The position numbers were made by a program, and so were the translations under genes. A stretch of DNA of 64,000 bases, taken from the NCBI GenBank assembly GCA_044892505.1, contig CM097884.1, forward strand, positions 127,534,001-127,598,000. The letters run 5' to 3'. This document shows, piece by piece, positions 33,507 through 38,510 of this stretch. Source of the DNA: Schmidtea nova. Lineage: Eukaryota. Numbering within the stretch: position 1 is the first letter of the stretch; each line of letters starts with the position of its first letter. The notes below the pieces were generated by a model, which did no database searches, was not told the origin of the DNA, and saw nothing but the letters and a program-made list of their open reading frames with translations.

Positions 33507-35679
33507 CCCCTGCTAATCCCAAAGGATCAAAGATTCTAGCTAAACAACTAAGAAATCCTCGTTTCGAGAGACATTGTTGACTTGGTGGCTTGACATCGTA
33601 ACCAAACTTATCCTCTGCCGCCACCCAAACTAGTCCCAGGGTTTTTACTGCCACCTTGTTCTCCTCGTTCAAACTTAATAACTTTGATATCCTCTCTAAA
33701 GGGATAGTTTCTAATACCTTTTTGTCATTAGTGAGCCATTTGTTCGTAACCATTCCTGCCTTCTCCCAAATACCAATAATCTCATCCTTGATCCTAACCG
33801 CCTCCTCGACCGATTGAAAAGAGTCCATCGTGTCATCCATGTACGTGGATTCTATTATTGTTTCTGCCGCCCTCGGAAACCTTTCTCGAAATCTCTCCGC
33901 ATTTCGTCTGGTGACTAGCTGTGCTAGAAACGGAGATATGTTTAGTCCGAAGACTAGCCGTTCGAATTCAAAACCCTCAGTTTTTCCATCTTCCTTCCAA
34001 ATGAATCTTAAGTATTTTCTATCCTCTGGATTTACCTTTATCTGGAGGTACATTTCTTGTATATCACAAGCAATCGCCACTGAATGTTTTCTGAATCGTA
34101 ATAGTATCTCAAACAAATCATTTTGTAGCTTTGGTCCTTGCTCAATAGTATCATTTAAATTAATACCGTTACTTTTCGCTGCTGCATCAAAGACTATTCT
34201 CATCTTGGTTGTCTCCTTGTCCATTTTTATCACCGGAAAATGTGGCAACCACCATCTTGTCTCACGAAATTCGCTCTCTGCCAACACCCTAATATACTTT
34301 TTTCGCACGTAGTCATTGATTACCTCTTTGTAGCTTTCTTTTAACCTACTGTCTTTCGCCAACCGATTGCCTAGACTCCTCAGACGCGTCTCCGCCATTT
34401 TCATATTCTCTTGAAGTTGATACTTGTTCTCCCTCCATAACAAGCTAACCGTGAACCTTCCATCCTCGCACGACATACCTTCGATCGCCTTTTGCATTAA
34501 TATTCCTTCACTCTGACTGAACTGATTCTTTTCAATGTGAGTTTCCTCAATTTCCCAAAATTGCCGCATCTGGTTCTCCAATCTCTCTGTTTTAGAAAAA
34601 TAGCTCTGGACAAAATGAGAGTGTTGCGGAGCTTGATCTCCATTGATCTTGCCCAGACATGTCCATCCGAGAGGCGTCAGTCTGGCAACCGGCTCATCCA
34701 TCATCCTTCCTACTTCTCGAATAGATCTGTGCAAATGGGGATAGTCGGCCCCAACTAAAACATCTATCTGCGGTCTTTTCCCAAGAACCGGGAATCGAAT
34801 ATCCTTTAGGTGCTCCCAGTTATACGCCAGCTTTTGCCAATTGCATGCTCTTAAGTCCCCCGTGACGCTTTTGACGACCAGAGCCTTAAAGTTGACTTTC
34901 ACCTTGTTATTATTGCTTGCCAACATCACCTCTATCGGCCTCGTTTCCAACATTTCCGATTTCCCCCCAATCACGCCAACTGGAATATTTTCCCATTGTC
35001 CCCCAACGCCTAATTTCTGAGCAACCCAATCACTAATGTAACTCACATTACTTGCATCGTCAAGTAATGCATTTACTCGGAATTCCTTCCCTTTATTAAT
35101 TAATTTGATCGGAATCGTTCTCAATGGCACATACATGTTCTGACTTTGTTCTGCGTGACAGGTCACCATTGACGTATTTTTATTCTCATCTTTCTTTTGA
35201 CCGTCATTTATTTTGACCCCTGGGCTATGCAGTAAGAAATGATGTTTTAACTTACAGTTTTCATTTTTACATTGACTGGGTTTCCCACAGTTCCTAACCA
35301 TGTGACCTGCCGACAGACAATTAAAACATAACCCGTTATTTTTCACAAACTCATGACGCTCTTTCGCATCATACCTTAAAAAGTCTGGGCATCGGTTTAA
35401 ATAATGTTCTCCTCTGCATTTCTTACATTTTAGTGTCGTTTTTCGTTCTCCACCAGCTTCTACCTTCGGATTGTTATCCACGAAATTTGTAACCCTCTTC
35501 TTATTTTCAATCTCCTTTCTATTTCCTGGCTTTCGCTCTCCAAACAATATATTCAAAGCTTTGCGATGCCTGTCAGCTTCTCTTTTTACCCATTCTGCCA
35601 AGGTTTGTACATTTGCCTCCTTCCCTGACTCACAATTGCGTGCCCACTGTATCAGCATGGTTTCCGGTAACTTTTTCAA
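33507..35679 (-). pseudogene. BEL/Pao gag C-terminus, protease and RT, 3'-truncated at the start of RNase H
   Basis: Three Cys motifs (CKKCRGEH..C, CFNCLSAGH..C, C..C..HHFLLH), ALLDDASNVSYI, WWLPHFPV, RIVFDAAAK, DIQEMYLQI, YMDD, RIFDPLG; codons after ~33507 run into unrelated repeat. Confidence 0.93.
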
Positions 35680-38510
35680 CAGTTGGTGATACAGGATTCC
35701 ATGTTTAACTCTCCTTCTCTCTTTTGGTCTTTGAACGTCAAGATTATATTTCCCAGTAGCTCTTCAAACCGTTCTAGGTCTTCCAATACATTGAGCCTCA
35801 CTGGGAAGAACCTCTGTACCGCGCCCAGCATCATTGAATATGTACGTTCTGGTCCACCAAATCTCTCATCCAATAATTTTATTGCCGCTTCAAAAGCTTG
35901 AGAGCCATATCCAATATAGGCGATTAATTGCAGAGGTTTCCCTTCCAAATACTGTCTTAAGTACAAGTATTTCCTTTCGCTCGTTTCCTCTGTGTCCTCA
36001 ATGCAAGCTCTCACAATTGCCCGCCACCCAGAATACTCCATGATCCTTCCATTAAATACCGGAAGCTGTAAGGGTTTCAACCCTGTCAACAATTTTGGCC
36101 TTTCCTTGACCTTGTCCGCCTGAAGAGATTGTTCCCCAATCTTAAATGATTCCATTTTAATACTCTCTTCCTTTTTACTAAACGCTAACTCTCCTATTCG
36201 GTTAAATTCCGCTTCCAATCGTTCGAGGTCTCTCTCAATATCCTTTAATTCGCTTCCTCTCTCTAATTCCCGAGCTTGCTGCTTCAGCTTTTCTAATTCT
36301 GTCACCACTTCTTCATACTTATCCTCATAAGCTTCTCTTCTGTTTTGTTCCTCCATGGAATCAACTGACTCAGCTAGCGCCTTATTACGGAGCCGCCCTA
36401 ATGCTATTTTTAATCCTGTTCGCCTTTTGTAACCTGCCTCAAACTCGGCATCGGTCACGGGACTTCCCCCATTCAACCGCAACAACAGAAATATGGTTGA
36501 ACCCATTTGTATATTATAGTCAGACAATTTACAGCCATCTCGTAATTGTTTCCCATCAAATACTAAACGTTGGTGACTCGGTGGAATACCCTCTTTGTCT
36601 TGTATTCTCGTTTTTACCTTTTCTATTGTGTCACTTGATTCAACTTCCATGGTAATGGTTTTTCCTGTTAACGTCTTTACAAATATTTGCATTCTCCCTC
36701 CCAATCTCAAAACTAGACCGAGAGTTGATTCCTTGGCGGGAATAGTCGTATTTCGATTAATTAACTTAGTGAAAACGCCGCCCAGAGTTTCAATACCCAA
36801 CGAAAGCGGTGTAACATCTAGCAATAAAACGTCAGTCACATACTCAGCAATAACTCCTCCCTGTATTGCTGCAACCATCGCAATAGCTTCATCTGGGCTC
36901 ACACTCTTACTAGGAACTCTACCGAAAAGTTTCTGCATAGTTTCTTGAACTTTAGTCATTCTTGTCATCCCACCAACTACCAACACTTCTTTAATGCCCG
37001 ATGTTTTTACCTCTGCATCTTTAATACCTTTTTCACAAGGTTCAATTGTTTTCTTAATTAGGTGCTCCACCAATTGCTCTAACTTTGACCGTGTGAACCT
37101 TAAACCCAAATGTTTAGGTCCTGTATTATCCATCGTCAAATATGGAAGATTAATGTCCGTTTGAACAGCTGATGACAATTCAATTGTAGCATTTTCAGCT
37201 GCCTCTCTAACTCTCTGTAAAGCCAGAGGGTCTTTATTAACATCAACGCCTTGATCACGTTTAAATTCATTACCGATACATTGTAAAGGCACATTATCAA
37301 AATCTTCCCCACCCAAAAACGTATCCCCACTTGTAGATTTTACTTCAAAACTATTATTCAGATTTTTTATATAACTATCTCGCTTTAGCTTAATGATTTC
37401 CCAGTTGAAACACCCATAATTGACTTTAAATCCATAGTTTTTAACCTCTCGCCCTATCTCTCTAATCATCGCTGTACTATACATTATTTCTTTTGGAACA
37501 CACCCCTTATTCACACAAGCCCCACCCATTTTATTTTTTCCAATTAAAAGAACAGATCTCCTATATCCATCTGTTCTCCTGGCTAATTCGCCCCCCAATT
37601 GAAAAGAATGCTGGGGCCCATAGCAGCATCTTTTCCGGTCCCTTAATGGACCCAACCCACCGCAAAACATGGTAAAGGGCAGAGGGGGAAATGTTTTAAC
37701 CCAGGATAAAAATTTACAATAATAAAGTTCAAAATAATGTACAAAGATATTACAAAAACATAAATTATGAAAAGGTACCTTGTCCTGGCTGGATAGCCAG
37801 AACAGTATTGTCCATTTTCCGAGAAGTACGTGGTCCCCCGACGGGAACCACGCTCTGCTACCATTTTTGTTTCTGACAACACGCAACACTGTTTCAAGGA
37901 TTTTATTATCAATTGACTCGAGAGAGATAACACAATTAAGCATAAATATGTCCTCAAAATCACCTTGATCGAAATCAAGTAACGTCTGTAATGATTTCCC
38001 CAAGGTTGGATTGAGCTCGATTAAATCATCTAGATTAGCCTTTTCATTGAACAATGTTTCGAACATTACAAGAGGAGATTGAGGATCAATCATAAAGTTA
38101 TTGTAAATTGCGAGACCAAACAATCTACCGATCAGATTAAACTGGGTTAAATTGTCATCAAATATCATTTTGTTAAACCAGCCGAGTCTTGATTCAGGAT
38201 ACATTTCAGTAGGATCCAAGGCAGCATTGACAGCCAACTGCTTGGGAATAACCAACAAGGCTTTAGCGAATCCATCAATTGCAATTTGTTCTCTGGAACT
38301 AATCGTCATAGCATATTTCTCGAGATATACATGCAAAGCGGCTTCACATGCACCACCACTAGGAACAACAGATTTACTTTCCAGTGACCTTTTAACAACA
38401 CAAAACGAATCACGCAATGAACGTTCCATTTTCCACATCGAAAGCGAAACCAAAAATACTTCCAAAGCAATATTTAAATTCAAATCCAAAAAATCTCCGT
38501 TAAACTTCAA
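35676..38510 (-). CDS. 944-aa chimeric ORF: CCT1 + HECT + leader + glutathione reductase + mtHsp70 + ubiquitin fused to BEL/Pao Gag; a 1-bp frameshift at ~35700 separates it from the rest of gag-pol
   Basis: Continuous ORF in the supplied track; segments recognised individually; the shifted frame restores [13 protein letters not shown]. Confidence 0.88.
36465..36734 (-). pseudogene. Captured polyubiquitin segment: 14-aa tail of one unit plus one complete divergent unit (36692-36465) ending LRLNGG
   Basis: [28 protein letters not shown]...LLRLNGG. Confidence 0.93.
36732..37349 (-). pseudogene. HSPA9: Captured mitochondrial Hsp70 fragment
   Basis: [67 protein letters not shown]. Confidence 0.92.
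37353..37598 (-). pseudogene. GSR: Captured glutathione reductase N-terminal fragment
   Basis: [38 protein letters not shown] contains the redox-active CVNxGC motif. Confidence 0.9.
37846..37863 (-). promoter_or_regulatory. Primer-binding site complementary to the 3' end of initiator tRNA-Met
   Basis: TGGTAGCAGAGCGTGGTT, preceded by ...AACA-AAAA and followed by GC-rich hairpins. Confidence 0.75.
37884..38201 (-). pseudogene. Captured HECT E3 ligase fragment (HERC3/4-like N-lobe)
   Basis: [41 protein letters not shown]. Confidence 0.85.
38202..38429 (-). pseudogene. CCT1: Captured TCP-1 alpha fragment
   Basis: [56 protein letters not shown]. Confidence 0.9.

Follow-up and report, generated by a model that had tools for sequence, protein, structure and literature searches.

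At positions 35676 to 38510 on the reverse strand of the window, a stretch of 64,000 nucleotides from Schmidtea nova (contig CM097884.1, 127,534,001 to 127,598,000), the open reading frame (ORF) listing contains a stop-free frame of 944 amino acids in which pieces of host genes precede a BEL/Pao Gag. This locus raises the question of where such a chimera was made, how the host pieces came to share one frame, and what keeps that frame open. All features described below lie on the reverse strand and are given in window positions.

Host-derived fragments ahead of Gag

As judged by sequence similarity, five host genes supply the cargo: CCT1, a HERC-type HECT ligase, glutathione reductase (GR), mitochondrial Hsp70 and polyubiquitin. 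The initial annotation had described five host fragments, sense, in their native frames and stop-free, ahead of the BEL/Pao Gag, and the ORF listing, Pfam and PDB confirmed this description. The cargo contains 0 stops in frame; the two remaining frames have 39 and 82.

The CCT1 (TCP1-alpha) fragment (38199..38432) lies within the long terminal repeat (LTR) and matches Pfam Cpn60_TCP1 at amino acids 27 to 104 of the frame and residues 387 to 468 of TCP1-alpha in the PDB (E = 4e-26); its closest match is residues 344 to 421 of the CCT1-like protein P0121, with 85% identity. The HECT-domain fragment (37920..38201), also within the LTR, is recognized by Pfam HECT at amino acids 104 to 195 and by PDB at 104 to 197, and its best relatives, proteins with RCC1 and HECT (HERC-type ligases), are only 41% identical. 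The other three, GR, Hsp70 and polyubiquitin, come after the primer binding site and ahead of Gag. The GR fragment (37353..37598), which matches residues 19 to 95 of GR in the PDB (E = 2e-15), keeps the CxxxxC site and varies in length among copies. The mitochondrial Hsp70 (mortalin) fragment (36735..37352; Pfam HSP70 at amino acids 387 to 601, PDB mitochondrial Stress-70 residues 213 to 445) is 83% identical to Dugesia mortalin. The polyubiquitin piece (36465..36734; Pfam ubiquitin at amino acids 609 to 679, PDB polyubiquitin at 593 to 682) consists of the tail of one repeat (36693-36734) and one whole ubiquitin ending LRLNGG (36465-36692).

The element family and the state of the copy in the window

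According to our analysis, the window copy is dead, frameshifted and 3'-truncated; it belongs to a young family of BEL/Pao LTR retrotransposons that has reached high copy number in S. nova (schNov1). The chimera was inherited from this family, which has hundreds of copies, and was not made at the window locus. Gag (35676..36464), with no Met near its start, is identified by Pfam DUF1759 at amino acids 819 to 923 of the 944-amino-acid frame; this domain scores 19.2 bits in the window, below the cut-off of 25.4, and 31.8 to 40.9 bits in sibling copies. Gag is separated from Pol (33502..35679, RVT_1 match) by a 1-nt deletion at 35702 that is private to the window copy, all other copies and nearly all public contigs having one more base there. 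Pol ends abruptly at 33502 in the window and goes on past this point in all other copies. The frames of two relatives, L006 and L020, carry RVT_1, Peptidase_A17 (E = 2e-44) and Integrase_H2C2, and a sibling frame also carries DUF1759; owing to the cut at 33502, only RVT_1 of these Pol domains is left in the window copy.

A first look through the genome gave candidate places, which are not copy counts, at 771 positions for the Hsp70 fragment (150 were scored, and nearly all of these are full length), 631 for CCT (longer CCT fragments of other subfamilies included) and 614 for GR. In relatives the carrier is not internally deleted, and the frame of the cargo goes on into a complete Gag-Pol. Uninterrupted from CCT to Pol, such frames span at least 2,163 amino acids in L006/7, 2,043 in L020 and 1,689 in L002, and open frames reach up to 2,422 amino acids among the copies with the Hsp70 fragment. 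The family has the hallmarks of BEL/Pao elements: its LTRs have TGT...ACA ends, the 5' LTR is followed by a primer binding site, and the 3' LTR is preceded by a polypurine tract. Together with the identity of LTR pairs in full copies (870 bp at 99.1% and 915 bp at 99.8%), these features point to recent activity. Both full copies examined for a target-site duplication sit in an (AAT)n microsatellite, which masks any duplication, and the window copy has no 3' end.

The initial annotation had proposed a search for other copies with the same or different cargo; such copies exist by the hundreds, and the relatives L020 (a long CCT, no HECT or GR) and L038 (a long HECT, no CCT) carry differing sets, which bears out the serial acquisition claimed there. 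Four public runs of one study, whose library type is not given, contain the sequence as short contigs that carry no start, end or strand information. Depth over 36586-38349 in these runs is roughly 15-fold higher, which fits a cargo module common to more elements than the window-type Gag-Pol.

LTR, primer binding site and leader

Mapping the LTR pairs of full copies onto the window defines a 5' LTR of 943 bp (TGT...ACA, 37868..38810). Its U3-like 5' part (38541..38810) differs between subfamilies: homology among copies begins at about 38534-38540 or at 38605, and three upstream versions are found. The 3' two-thirds of the LTR is made up of the CCT and HECT pieces, which are therefore copied into both LTRs in each cycle. 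Two in-frame ATGs (codons 25 and 28, 38427..38438), the likely start of the polyprotein, are invariant in 23/23 copies that hold this stretch, and the indels that distinguish copies ahead of codon 21 have lengths not divisible by 3. A tiny upstream ATG, 71 to 84 nt before codon 25, is present in many copies and counts against the proposed translation start.

The primer binding site TGGTAGCAGAGCGTGGTT (37846..37863) comes after the end of the LTR, both in the window and in copies A and B, and the reading frame passes through it, so that it would be translated within the frame. It may be that of the initiator tRNA-Met; a tRNA scan of the window detected no tRNA. From the primer binding site to the GR fragment extends an indel-rich leader (37599..37845) that is kept open. 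Each of its five length types (348, 357, 360, 372 and 387 nt) is divisible by 3, the only exceptions being private to single copies. When shuffled, a leader of 95 codons remains open in 0.34% of trials (0.0034). What had been taken for a noncoding-looking leader at amino acids 210 to 305 resolves into the last LTR bases, the primer binding site and the leader proper.

Junctions and mode of capture

Microhomology was examined at the CCT-HECT junction, one of the junctions, where the crossover falls on 7 nt, TGAAATG (38202..38208): to either side of these shared bases, L020 continues as native CCT1 and L038 as native HECT. In the public runs, both alternative continuations appear as loose ends at 38202 and 38208. 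The genome contains 95 instances of the 36-nt CCT-HECT junction, against 0 in the reversed control. Most of them form same-strand pairs 4.3 to 7.5 kb apart and belong to the two LTRs of one element; the window has only one. These 95 identical junctions in LTR pairs led us to reject both an assembly chimera and a Helitron or Pack-type capture at the window locus.

The fragments were originally described as intronless. However, the host genes for mortalin (C3:30869204-30871087) and CCT1 (C2:206962329-206963840) are each a single open frame, so the absence of introns from the cargo is uninformative on capture at the RNA or DNA level. The genome search with the GR fragment was dominated by element copies and picked out no donor gene. 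Of the proposal that reverse transcriptase switched templates onto mRNAs, the 7-nt microhomology is in favor, whereas intron loss does not separate the RNA from the DNA level.

Selection on the frame and on its residues

Estimates of dN/dS are 0.03 to 0.26 for Gag and mostly 0.05 to 0.3 for Pol (up to 0.76 in a few closely related pairs), compared with about 0.7 for Hsp70 and about 1 for GR. For CCT and HECT together, the nonsynonymous-to-synonymous (non/syn) ratio is 2.05 to 2.25 versus 2.77 at random (P = 0.12 to 0.23). Variants common to at least two copies include 0 stops versus 5.3 expected (Poisson estimate, about 0.005), and for GR and Hsp70 alone P is 0.05, or 0.01 on a fuller copy set; singleton variants show stops at the neutral rate. 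Pairwise stop-permutation tests, which have low power, give P of about 0.25. The cargo diverges by 5 to 10% between subfamilies, and its frame is nevertheless open.

The dN/dS and stop-depletion analyses suggested in the initial annotation, therefore, support the view that continuity of the frame is under selection while the residues of GR and Hsp70 drift nearly neutrally. Its claim that selection acts on the frame and not on fragment function holds for GR and Hsp70, with their drift and 0 shared stops, and does not extend to ubiquitin.

The ubiquitin-Gag junction

Ubiquitin was found in every cargo variant seen, and its junction with Gag, GG/SPVTD, is identical in every copy read across it. 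A whole ubiquitin ending in GG stands directly before Gag in two Gag lineages, whose Gags are 33% identical and whose ubiquitins are 78% identical. The residue that follows GG is not Pro: the sequence is LRLNGG/S in the window type and LRLRGG/N in the L038 type. Pairwise dN/dS of ubiquitin is mostly 0.2 to 0.6 (range, 0.14 to 1.16). In the window's own subfamily, the non/syn ratio is 1.43 versus 3.25 at random (P about 0.1, n = 17), in a polymorphism test that excludes the L038-type copies, their ubiquitin differing at a dS of about 0.55; this is suggestive of constraint inside the subfamily. We think that ubiquitin is probably a host-cleaved linker joining the cargo to Gag and not neutral filler. 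The window-type ubiquitin carries R74N and in all 18/76 changes relative to the canonical sequence, which might impair cleavage. Literature searches brought up no description of a retrotransposon with ubiquitin-Gag. From the ESM Atlas came only clusters of plain DUF1759 Gag, and the homology search was swamped by long polyubiquitins, neither being informative on the absence of ubiquitin-Gag elsewhere.

Proposed explanation and alternatives

Proceeding from the observed anatomy, copy number and open frames, the selection on the frame and the one microhomology junction, we consider it probable that a single frame runs from the LTR ATG through the cargo to ubiquitin-Gag-Pol, is held open by selection, is cleaved at ubiquitin and gained its cargo by template-switch capture; where transcription and translation begin, the cut at ubiquitin and capture from RNA and not from DNA are predictions of this model. 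Translation most likely starts at the invariant ATG inside the LTR, and the ribosome would read the LTR end, primer binding site, leader, cargo and then ubiquitin-Gag-Pol as one polyprotein of >2,000 amino acids. Since Gag has no start codon of its own, any upstream stop or frameshift would kill the element, so that the frame is kept open and the GR and Hsp70 residues are free to drift. Host deubiquitinases probably cut between GG and the first Gag residue, releasing Gag-Pol from the upstream filler, and such cleavage would account for the tolerance of arbitrary in-frame additions. Fragments were probably gained stepwise and trimmed through microhomology-guided template switching during reverse transcription, and the cargo module has probably also moved between distant Gag lineages. 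More speculatively, and with slightly less than even confidence, we propose that planarian BEL/Pao elements have long matured by way of ubiquitin-Gag, relying on host deubiquitinases. As these enzymes would remove anything translated ahead of GG, the 5' end of the elements, including the transcribed part of the LTR, would serve as a permissive heritable landing pad, where host mRNA pieces could accumulate in frame, be reshuffled at microhomologies and be swapped as modules between distant lineages.

Alternatives can be set against this model both for the way in which the cargo was acquired and for the role of ubiquitin. Capture at the DNA level, by nested insertions, end joining or gene conversion between elements and retrocopies, with no template switching on copackaged mRNAs, is also compatible with the 7-nt microhomology, which fits microhomology-mediated end joining, and the single-exon mortalin and CCT1 genes make the missing introns neutral in this respect. 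However, all five pieces are sense, in frame and made up of coding sequence alone, they sit between the LTR ends of an element that undergoes reverse transcription, CCT and HECT occupy both LTRs of dozens of copies, and the pattern agrees with LTR-mediated retroposition (PMC5131818), and we deem capture at the DNA level unlikely. As regards ubiquitin, it could remain uncut and serve Gag as a degron or as a signal for trafficking or budding. In experiments, a late domain is replaced by ubiquitin fused to retroviral Gag, ubiquitin is kept before Gag across distant lineages, and R74N of the window type falls in the tail read by deubiquitinases. Linear N-terminal ubiquitin fusions are normally cut cotranslationally, though, and the element has precisely such a fusion, with an intact GG end followed by S or N and not P; uncut, it would make Gag drag along 600 amino acids of drifting filler, and this role seems quite improbable to us.

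The open frame itself could be read in two further ways. In the first, the cargo is functional and benefits the element through its chimeric N-terminal protein, which might, for instance, divert host proteostasis as a decoy or assist in assembly. This would suit the donors, which are all proteostasis or redox genes, the retained CxxxxC motif of GR and the slightly low non/syn ratio of CCT and HECT. The fragments, however, are only partial domains, the dN/dS of GR and Hsp70 is close to that of drifting sequence (about 1 and 0.7), and composition varies among subfamilies with long open frames (L020 and L038), as do GR lengths, all of which makes a functional cargo very unlikely. That the frame is open from youth alone, with the cargo neither selected nor translated, is scarcely tenable: the near identity of LTR pairs and the nonsignificant pairwise stop tests would agree with it, but the subfamilies' cargo has diverged and is still open, shared variants lack the expected stops, compensated indels hold the leader in frame across five length types, and the leader would seldom be open by chance.

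Comparison with known systems

The S. nova genome paper left open which transposon families drove genome expansion (PMC11410931). The family described here is one transposon family behind this expansion, and it raises the question of whether hundreds of sense host-mRNA pieces feed small-RNA pathways acting on host genes. If the proposed landing pad is real, it would amount to an engine of exon shuffling in nature, and chimeras of host fragments may be expressed from it by the hundreds.

Gene capture by LTR elements occurs in plants, with examples such as Bs1, and in animal LTR retrotransposons it is known mainly from single, dead chimeras. In most published cases of LTR-mediated retroposition, a single chimera, dead on arrival, is flanked by discontinuous elements (Tan et al. 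2016, PMC5131818). The S. nova family shares with them pieces derived from host mRNA in an LTR element, microsimilarity at the fusion point, several parent genes and a sense, in-frame arrangement (PMC5131818). Unlike them, its carrier is autonomous, with hundreds of copies carrying cargo, two fragments lie inside the LTR, and the cargo is part of the Gag-Pol frame. What is new, then, is an autonomous family in which five host fragments, two of them in the LTR, persist through repeated reverse transcription and are read within Gag-Pol.

The GG end of the ubiquitin in bovine viral diarrhea virus (BVDV) serves as a processing site cut by the host. In cytopathic pestiviruses such as BVDV, host ubiquitin coding sequence is recombined directly upstream of NS3, often with extra host or viral pieces further upstream (PMC13517609). 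The S. nova element likewise has an acquired host ubiquitin directly before its own protein; the RNA-virus insertions are short-lived and arise in single animals, whereas the S. nova arrangement is heritable, genomic and present in Gag lineages 33% identical. If ubiquitin is a host-cut linker, the element would parallel, among retrotransposons, the pestivirus insertions and the ubiquitin-fusion technique used in the laboratory, and the long useless stretches fronting an essential polyprotein would be explained.

In yeast Ty1, the GAG frame begins in the 5' LTR and includes the primer binding site. The S. nova frame also opens inside the LTR and traverses the primer binding site, but its LTR-encoded part consists of host CCT1 and HECT fragments, where that of Ty1 is native Gag. 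Acutely transforming retroviruses have captured host mRNA sequence in frame with Gag as well; in these Gag-onc captures, viral genes are usually lost, a helper virus is required and the cargo is functionally selected, in contrast to the S. nova cargo, which is N-terminal to an intact Gag-Pol and is mostly drifting.

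Composition of the reading frame and anatomy of the element

According to the ORF listing, the window holds a 944-aa frame without stops at 35676-38510(-), in which Pfam identifies Cpn60_TCP1 (aa 27-104), HECT (aa 104-195), HSP70 (aa 387-601), ubiquitin (aa 609-679), and DUF1759, a BEL/Pao Gag domain (aa 819-923). A search against solved structures assigned the CCT piece to TCP1-alpha residues 387-468, the GR piece to glutathione reductase residues 19-95, with the redox CxxxxC retained, the Hsp70 piece to mitochondrial Stress-70 residues 213-445, and the polyubiquitin piece to the tail of one repeat followed by one whole repeat. 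The nearest relatives of the HECT piece are RCC1+HECT (HERC-type) ligases, and the best match of the Hsp70 cargo is planarian mortalin (83% identity to that of Dugesia japonica). The cargo contains no stops in its own frame, whereas the two alternative frames contain 39 and 82. These matches and stop counts therefore confirm the initial annotation in its observation that five host pieces and Gag share one stop-free frame.

Two full copies, A (L002 and L032) and B (L004 and L033), were rebuilt from loci fetched from the S. nova genome. Their total lengths are 8,359 and 8,438 bp, their LTRs measure 870 bp (99.1% identity) and 915 bp (99.8% identity), and both feature TGT...ACA ends, a polypurine tract, and flanking (AAT)n. 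When mapped from these copies, the 5' LTR occupies window positions 38810-37868(-) and is followed by the primer binding site TGGTAGCAGAGCGTGGTT at 37863-37846(-); the CCT piece (38432-38199(-)) and the HECT piece (38201 to about 37920(-)) thus lie inside the LTR. The stretch between HECT and GR (aa ~210-305), previously described as a non-coding-looking leader, is open, and when shuffled it is open in 0.34% of trials; it is made up of the last bases of the LTR, the primer binding site, and the leader proper. The sibling frames contain RVT_1, Peptidase_A17, and Integrase_H2C2, which assigns the family to BEL/Pao. Since the flanks are an (AAT)n microsatellite, any target-site duplication is hidden. 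This microsatellite flanks copies A and B on both sides as well as many other loci, and is found at window 32559-32660, suggesting that the element prefers this repeat as its target.

Occurrence in the genome and state of the window copy

The chimera is a family trait and not a local event at the window. A DNA search of the genome found 29 further places with the whole or part of the unit, whose main blocks are mostly 95 to 99% identical. At first look, the Hsp70 piece had 771 candidate places, the CCT piece 631, and the GR piece 614; these figures are not copy counts, and that for CCT also takes in the longer CCT fragments present in other subfamilies. The 36-nt CCT|HECT junction, present only once in the window, has 95 occurrences in the genome versus none in a reversed control, mostly as same-strand pairs with 4.3 to 7.5 kb between them, and element sequence was also detected in contigs of four public sequencing runs (X1 to X4). 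An assembly chimera is ruled out by the junctions repeated genome-wide and by the public-run contigs. The search for copies with the same or different cargo, proposed initially, returned many, with cargo sets that vary (e.g., at loci L020 and L038). Summed over X1 to X4, the contig depth of the cargo module (window 36586-38349) is ~15 to 20 times that of Gag-Pol, an excess that fits a cargo module common to many more elements than the window's Gag-Pol type.

The window copy itself is dead. A private 1-nt deletion at 35702 parts Gag from Pol, the lost base being present in every other copy and in almost every public contig, and homology stops at 33502, where other copies go on with Pol. Just past this cut-off point lies a 198-nt inverted repeat (32634-32831 and 33173-33370; 99.5% identity), which may be part of whatever took away the 3' half of the element. 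The surrounding window is mostly transposon debris. An integrase ORF with Integrase_H2C2 and rve (30925-32379(-)) is flanked by a pair of direct repeats of 168 nt (99% identity; 30695-30862 and 32394-32561), and the segment 30695-32561 looks like a piece of another LTR element. The two strands differ strongly in composition over the long stretch 48000-60000 (AT skew, about -0.4), where a 952-aa ORF (49616-52474(-)) encodes Retrotrans_gag and zinc knuckles; the stretch is probably part of a large element of the Gypsy type. Also found were a fragment of a mariner-type transposase (Transposase_1; 42929-43249(-)) and a separate reverse-transcriptase ORF (18912-19754(+)).

Selection on the frame and probable start of translation

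In pairwise comparisons with the window as reference, dN/dS was 0.03 to 0.26 in Gag, mostly 0.05 to 0.3 in Pol, with a few closely related pairs up to 0.76, about 0.7 in Hsp70, about 1 in GR, and mostly 0.2 to 0.6 in ubiquitin (range, 0.14 to 1.16). Among variants private to a single copy, stops occur at the neutral rate. Variants common to at least two copies, which have therefore passed through transposition, include no stops over the cargo versus about 5.3 expected (Poisson estimate, about 0.005); for GR and Hsp70 alone, this absence has a P of 0.05, or 0.01 on a fuller copy set. The nonsynonymous/synonymous ratio of shared variants equals the random expectation in GR and Hsp70 and is far lower than random in Gag. 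The distance from the LTR end to the GR core falls into five length types (348, 357, 360, 372, and 387 nt), all multiples of three although made up of indels that themselves are not, and the two exceptions are each private to one copy. The absence of shared stops, the lengths in multiples of three, and the neutral ratio in GR and Hsp70 support the earlier proposal that selection acts on frame continuity and not on the residues of the fragments.

Uninterrupted frames of the type CCT-HECT-PBS-leader-GR-Hsp70-Ub-Gag-Pol are present at L006/L007 (2,163 aa or more, with the frame extending past the locus), L020 (2,043 aa, with a cargo order lacking HECT and GR), L002 (1,689 aa), and others, the longest open frames among the listed Hsp70-bearing places reaching 2,422 aa. 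Codons 25 and 28 of the 944-aa frame, where the CCT piece begins, are both ATG and do not vary in the 23/23 copies holding them. Copies that are intact elsewhere differ from one another 5' of codon 21 by indels whose lengths are not divisible by three. Gag has no Met close to its start. From these sequence features, we infer that translation would start at codon 25 or 28, which would place the transcription start within the 5'-most third of the LTR, a region that differs between subfamilies. Many copies also have a small upstream ATG, 71 to 84 nt ahead of codon 25.

Internally deleted derivatives, arranged as LTR-internal-LTR-internal tandem arrays, were observed at L011 to L017 (e.g., L014:1-7306) and L034. 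Projected onto the window, they end at 34222, and some 1,050 nt of different sequence take the place of RT-RNaseH-integrase. Without RT, they still hold the cargo-Gag frame, which is a single frame of 1,817 aa in L013.

Acquisition of the cargo and the ubiquitin ahead of Gag

Cargo composition differs among elements: in L020 the CCT piece is longer and the Hsp70 piece shorter, and HECT and GR are missing; in L038 the HECT piece is longer and CCT is missing; and GR pieces occur in several lengths. At the CCT|HECT point, L020 keeps to the native CCT1 sequence and L038 to that of native HECT, whereas the window type switches from CCT to HECT, in frame, within the common 7-nt TGAAATG; each of the two other continuations is seen as a loose end in the public runs. 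These differences and the TGAAATG crossover are consistent with template switching guided by microhomology, a mechanism described for LTR-mediated retroposition (PMC5131818). The cargo module is 90 to 95% identical between the two Gag lineages and therefore moved between them. Intron loss had been suggested as a test of capture; the pieces are intronless, but this has no bearing on RNA-level capture since host mortalin (G000:C3:30869204-30871087) and CCT1 (G000:C2:206962329-206963840) are themselves single open frames over nearly their whole length, and thus have no introns there.

A whole ubiquitin ending in GG lies directly ahead of Gag in every cargo variant seen. In the second subfamily (L038 to L040), whose Gag is just 33% identical to that of the window, LRLRGG is likewise followed by Gag, and the Gag alignments of the two lineages start at most 2 residues apart. 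Counted from the sequences, their ubiquitins are 78% identical, with dS of about 0.55 and dN of about 0.12. Either the ubiquitin-Gag fusion is older than the lineage split, with ubiquitin held far tighter than Gag, or it arose twice; either case speaks for a function. Within the subfamily of the window, purifying constraint on ubiquitin is only suggestive (P about 0.1). The overall interpretation of the initial annotation, template switching with selection on the frame, is largely right once amended for inheritance by a family, the location of CCT and HECT in the LTR, and the distinct standing of ubiquitin.

We propose that host deubiquitinases may cut after GG, which would free Gag-Pol from the upstream filler. 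Our literature search found no description of a ubiquitin-Gag retrotransposon. The element adds to LTR-mediated gene capture, and its putative ubiquitin-linker mechanism, which is open to testing, is proposed from the parallel with natural ubiquitin-fusion genes and with pestiviruses, where ubiquitin insertions occur ahead of NS3 (PMC13517609).
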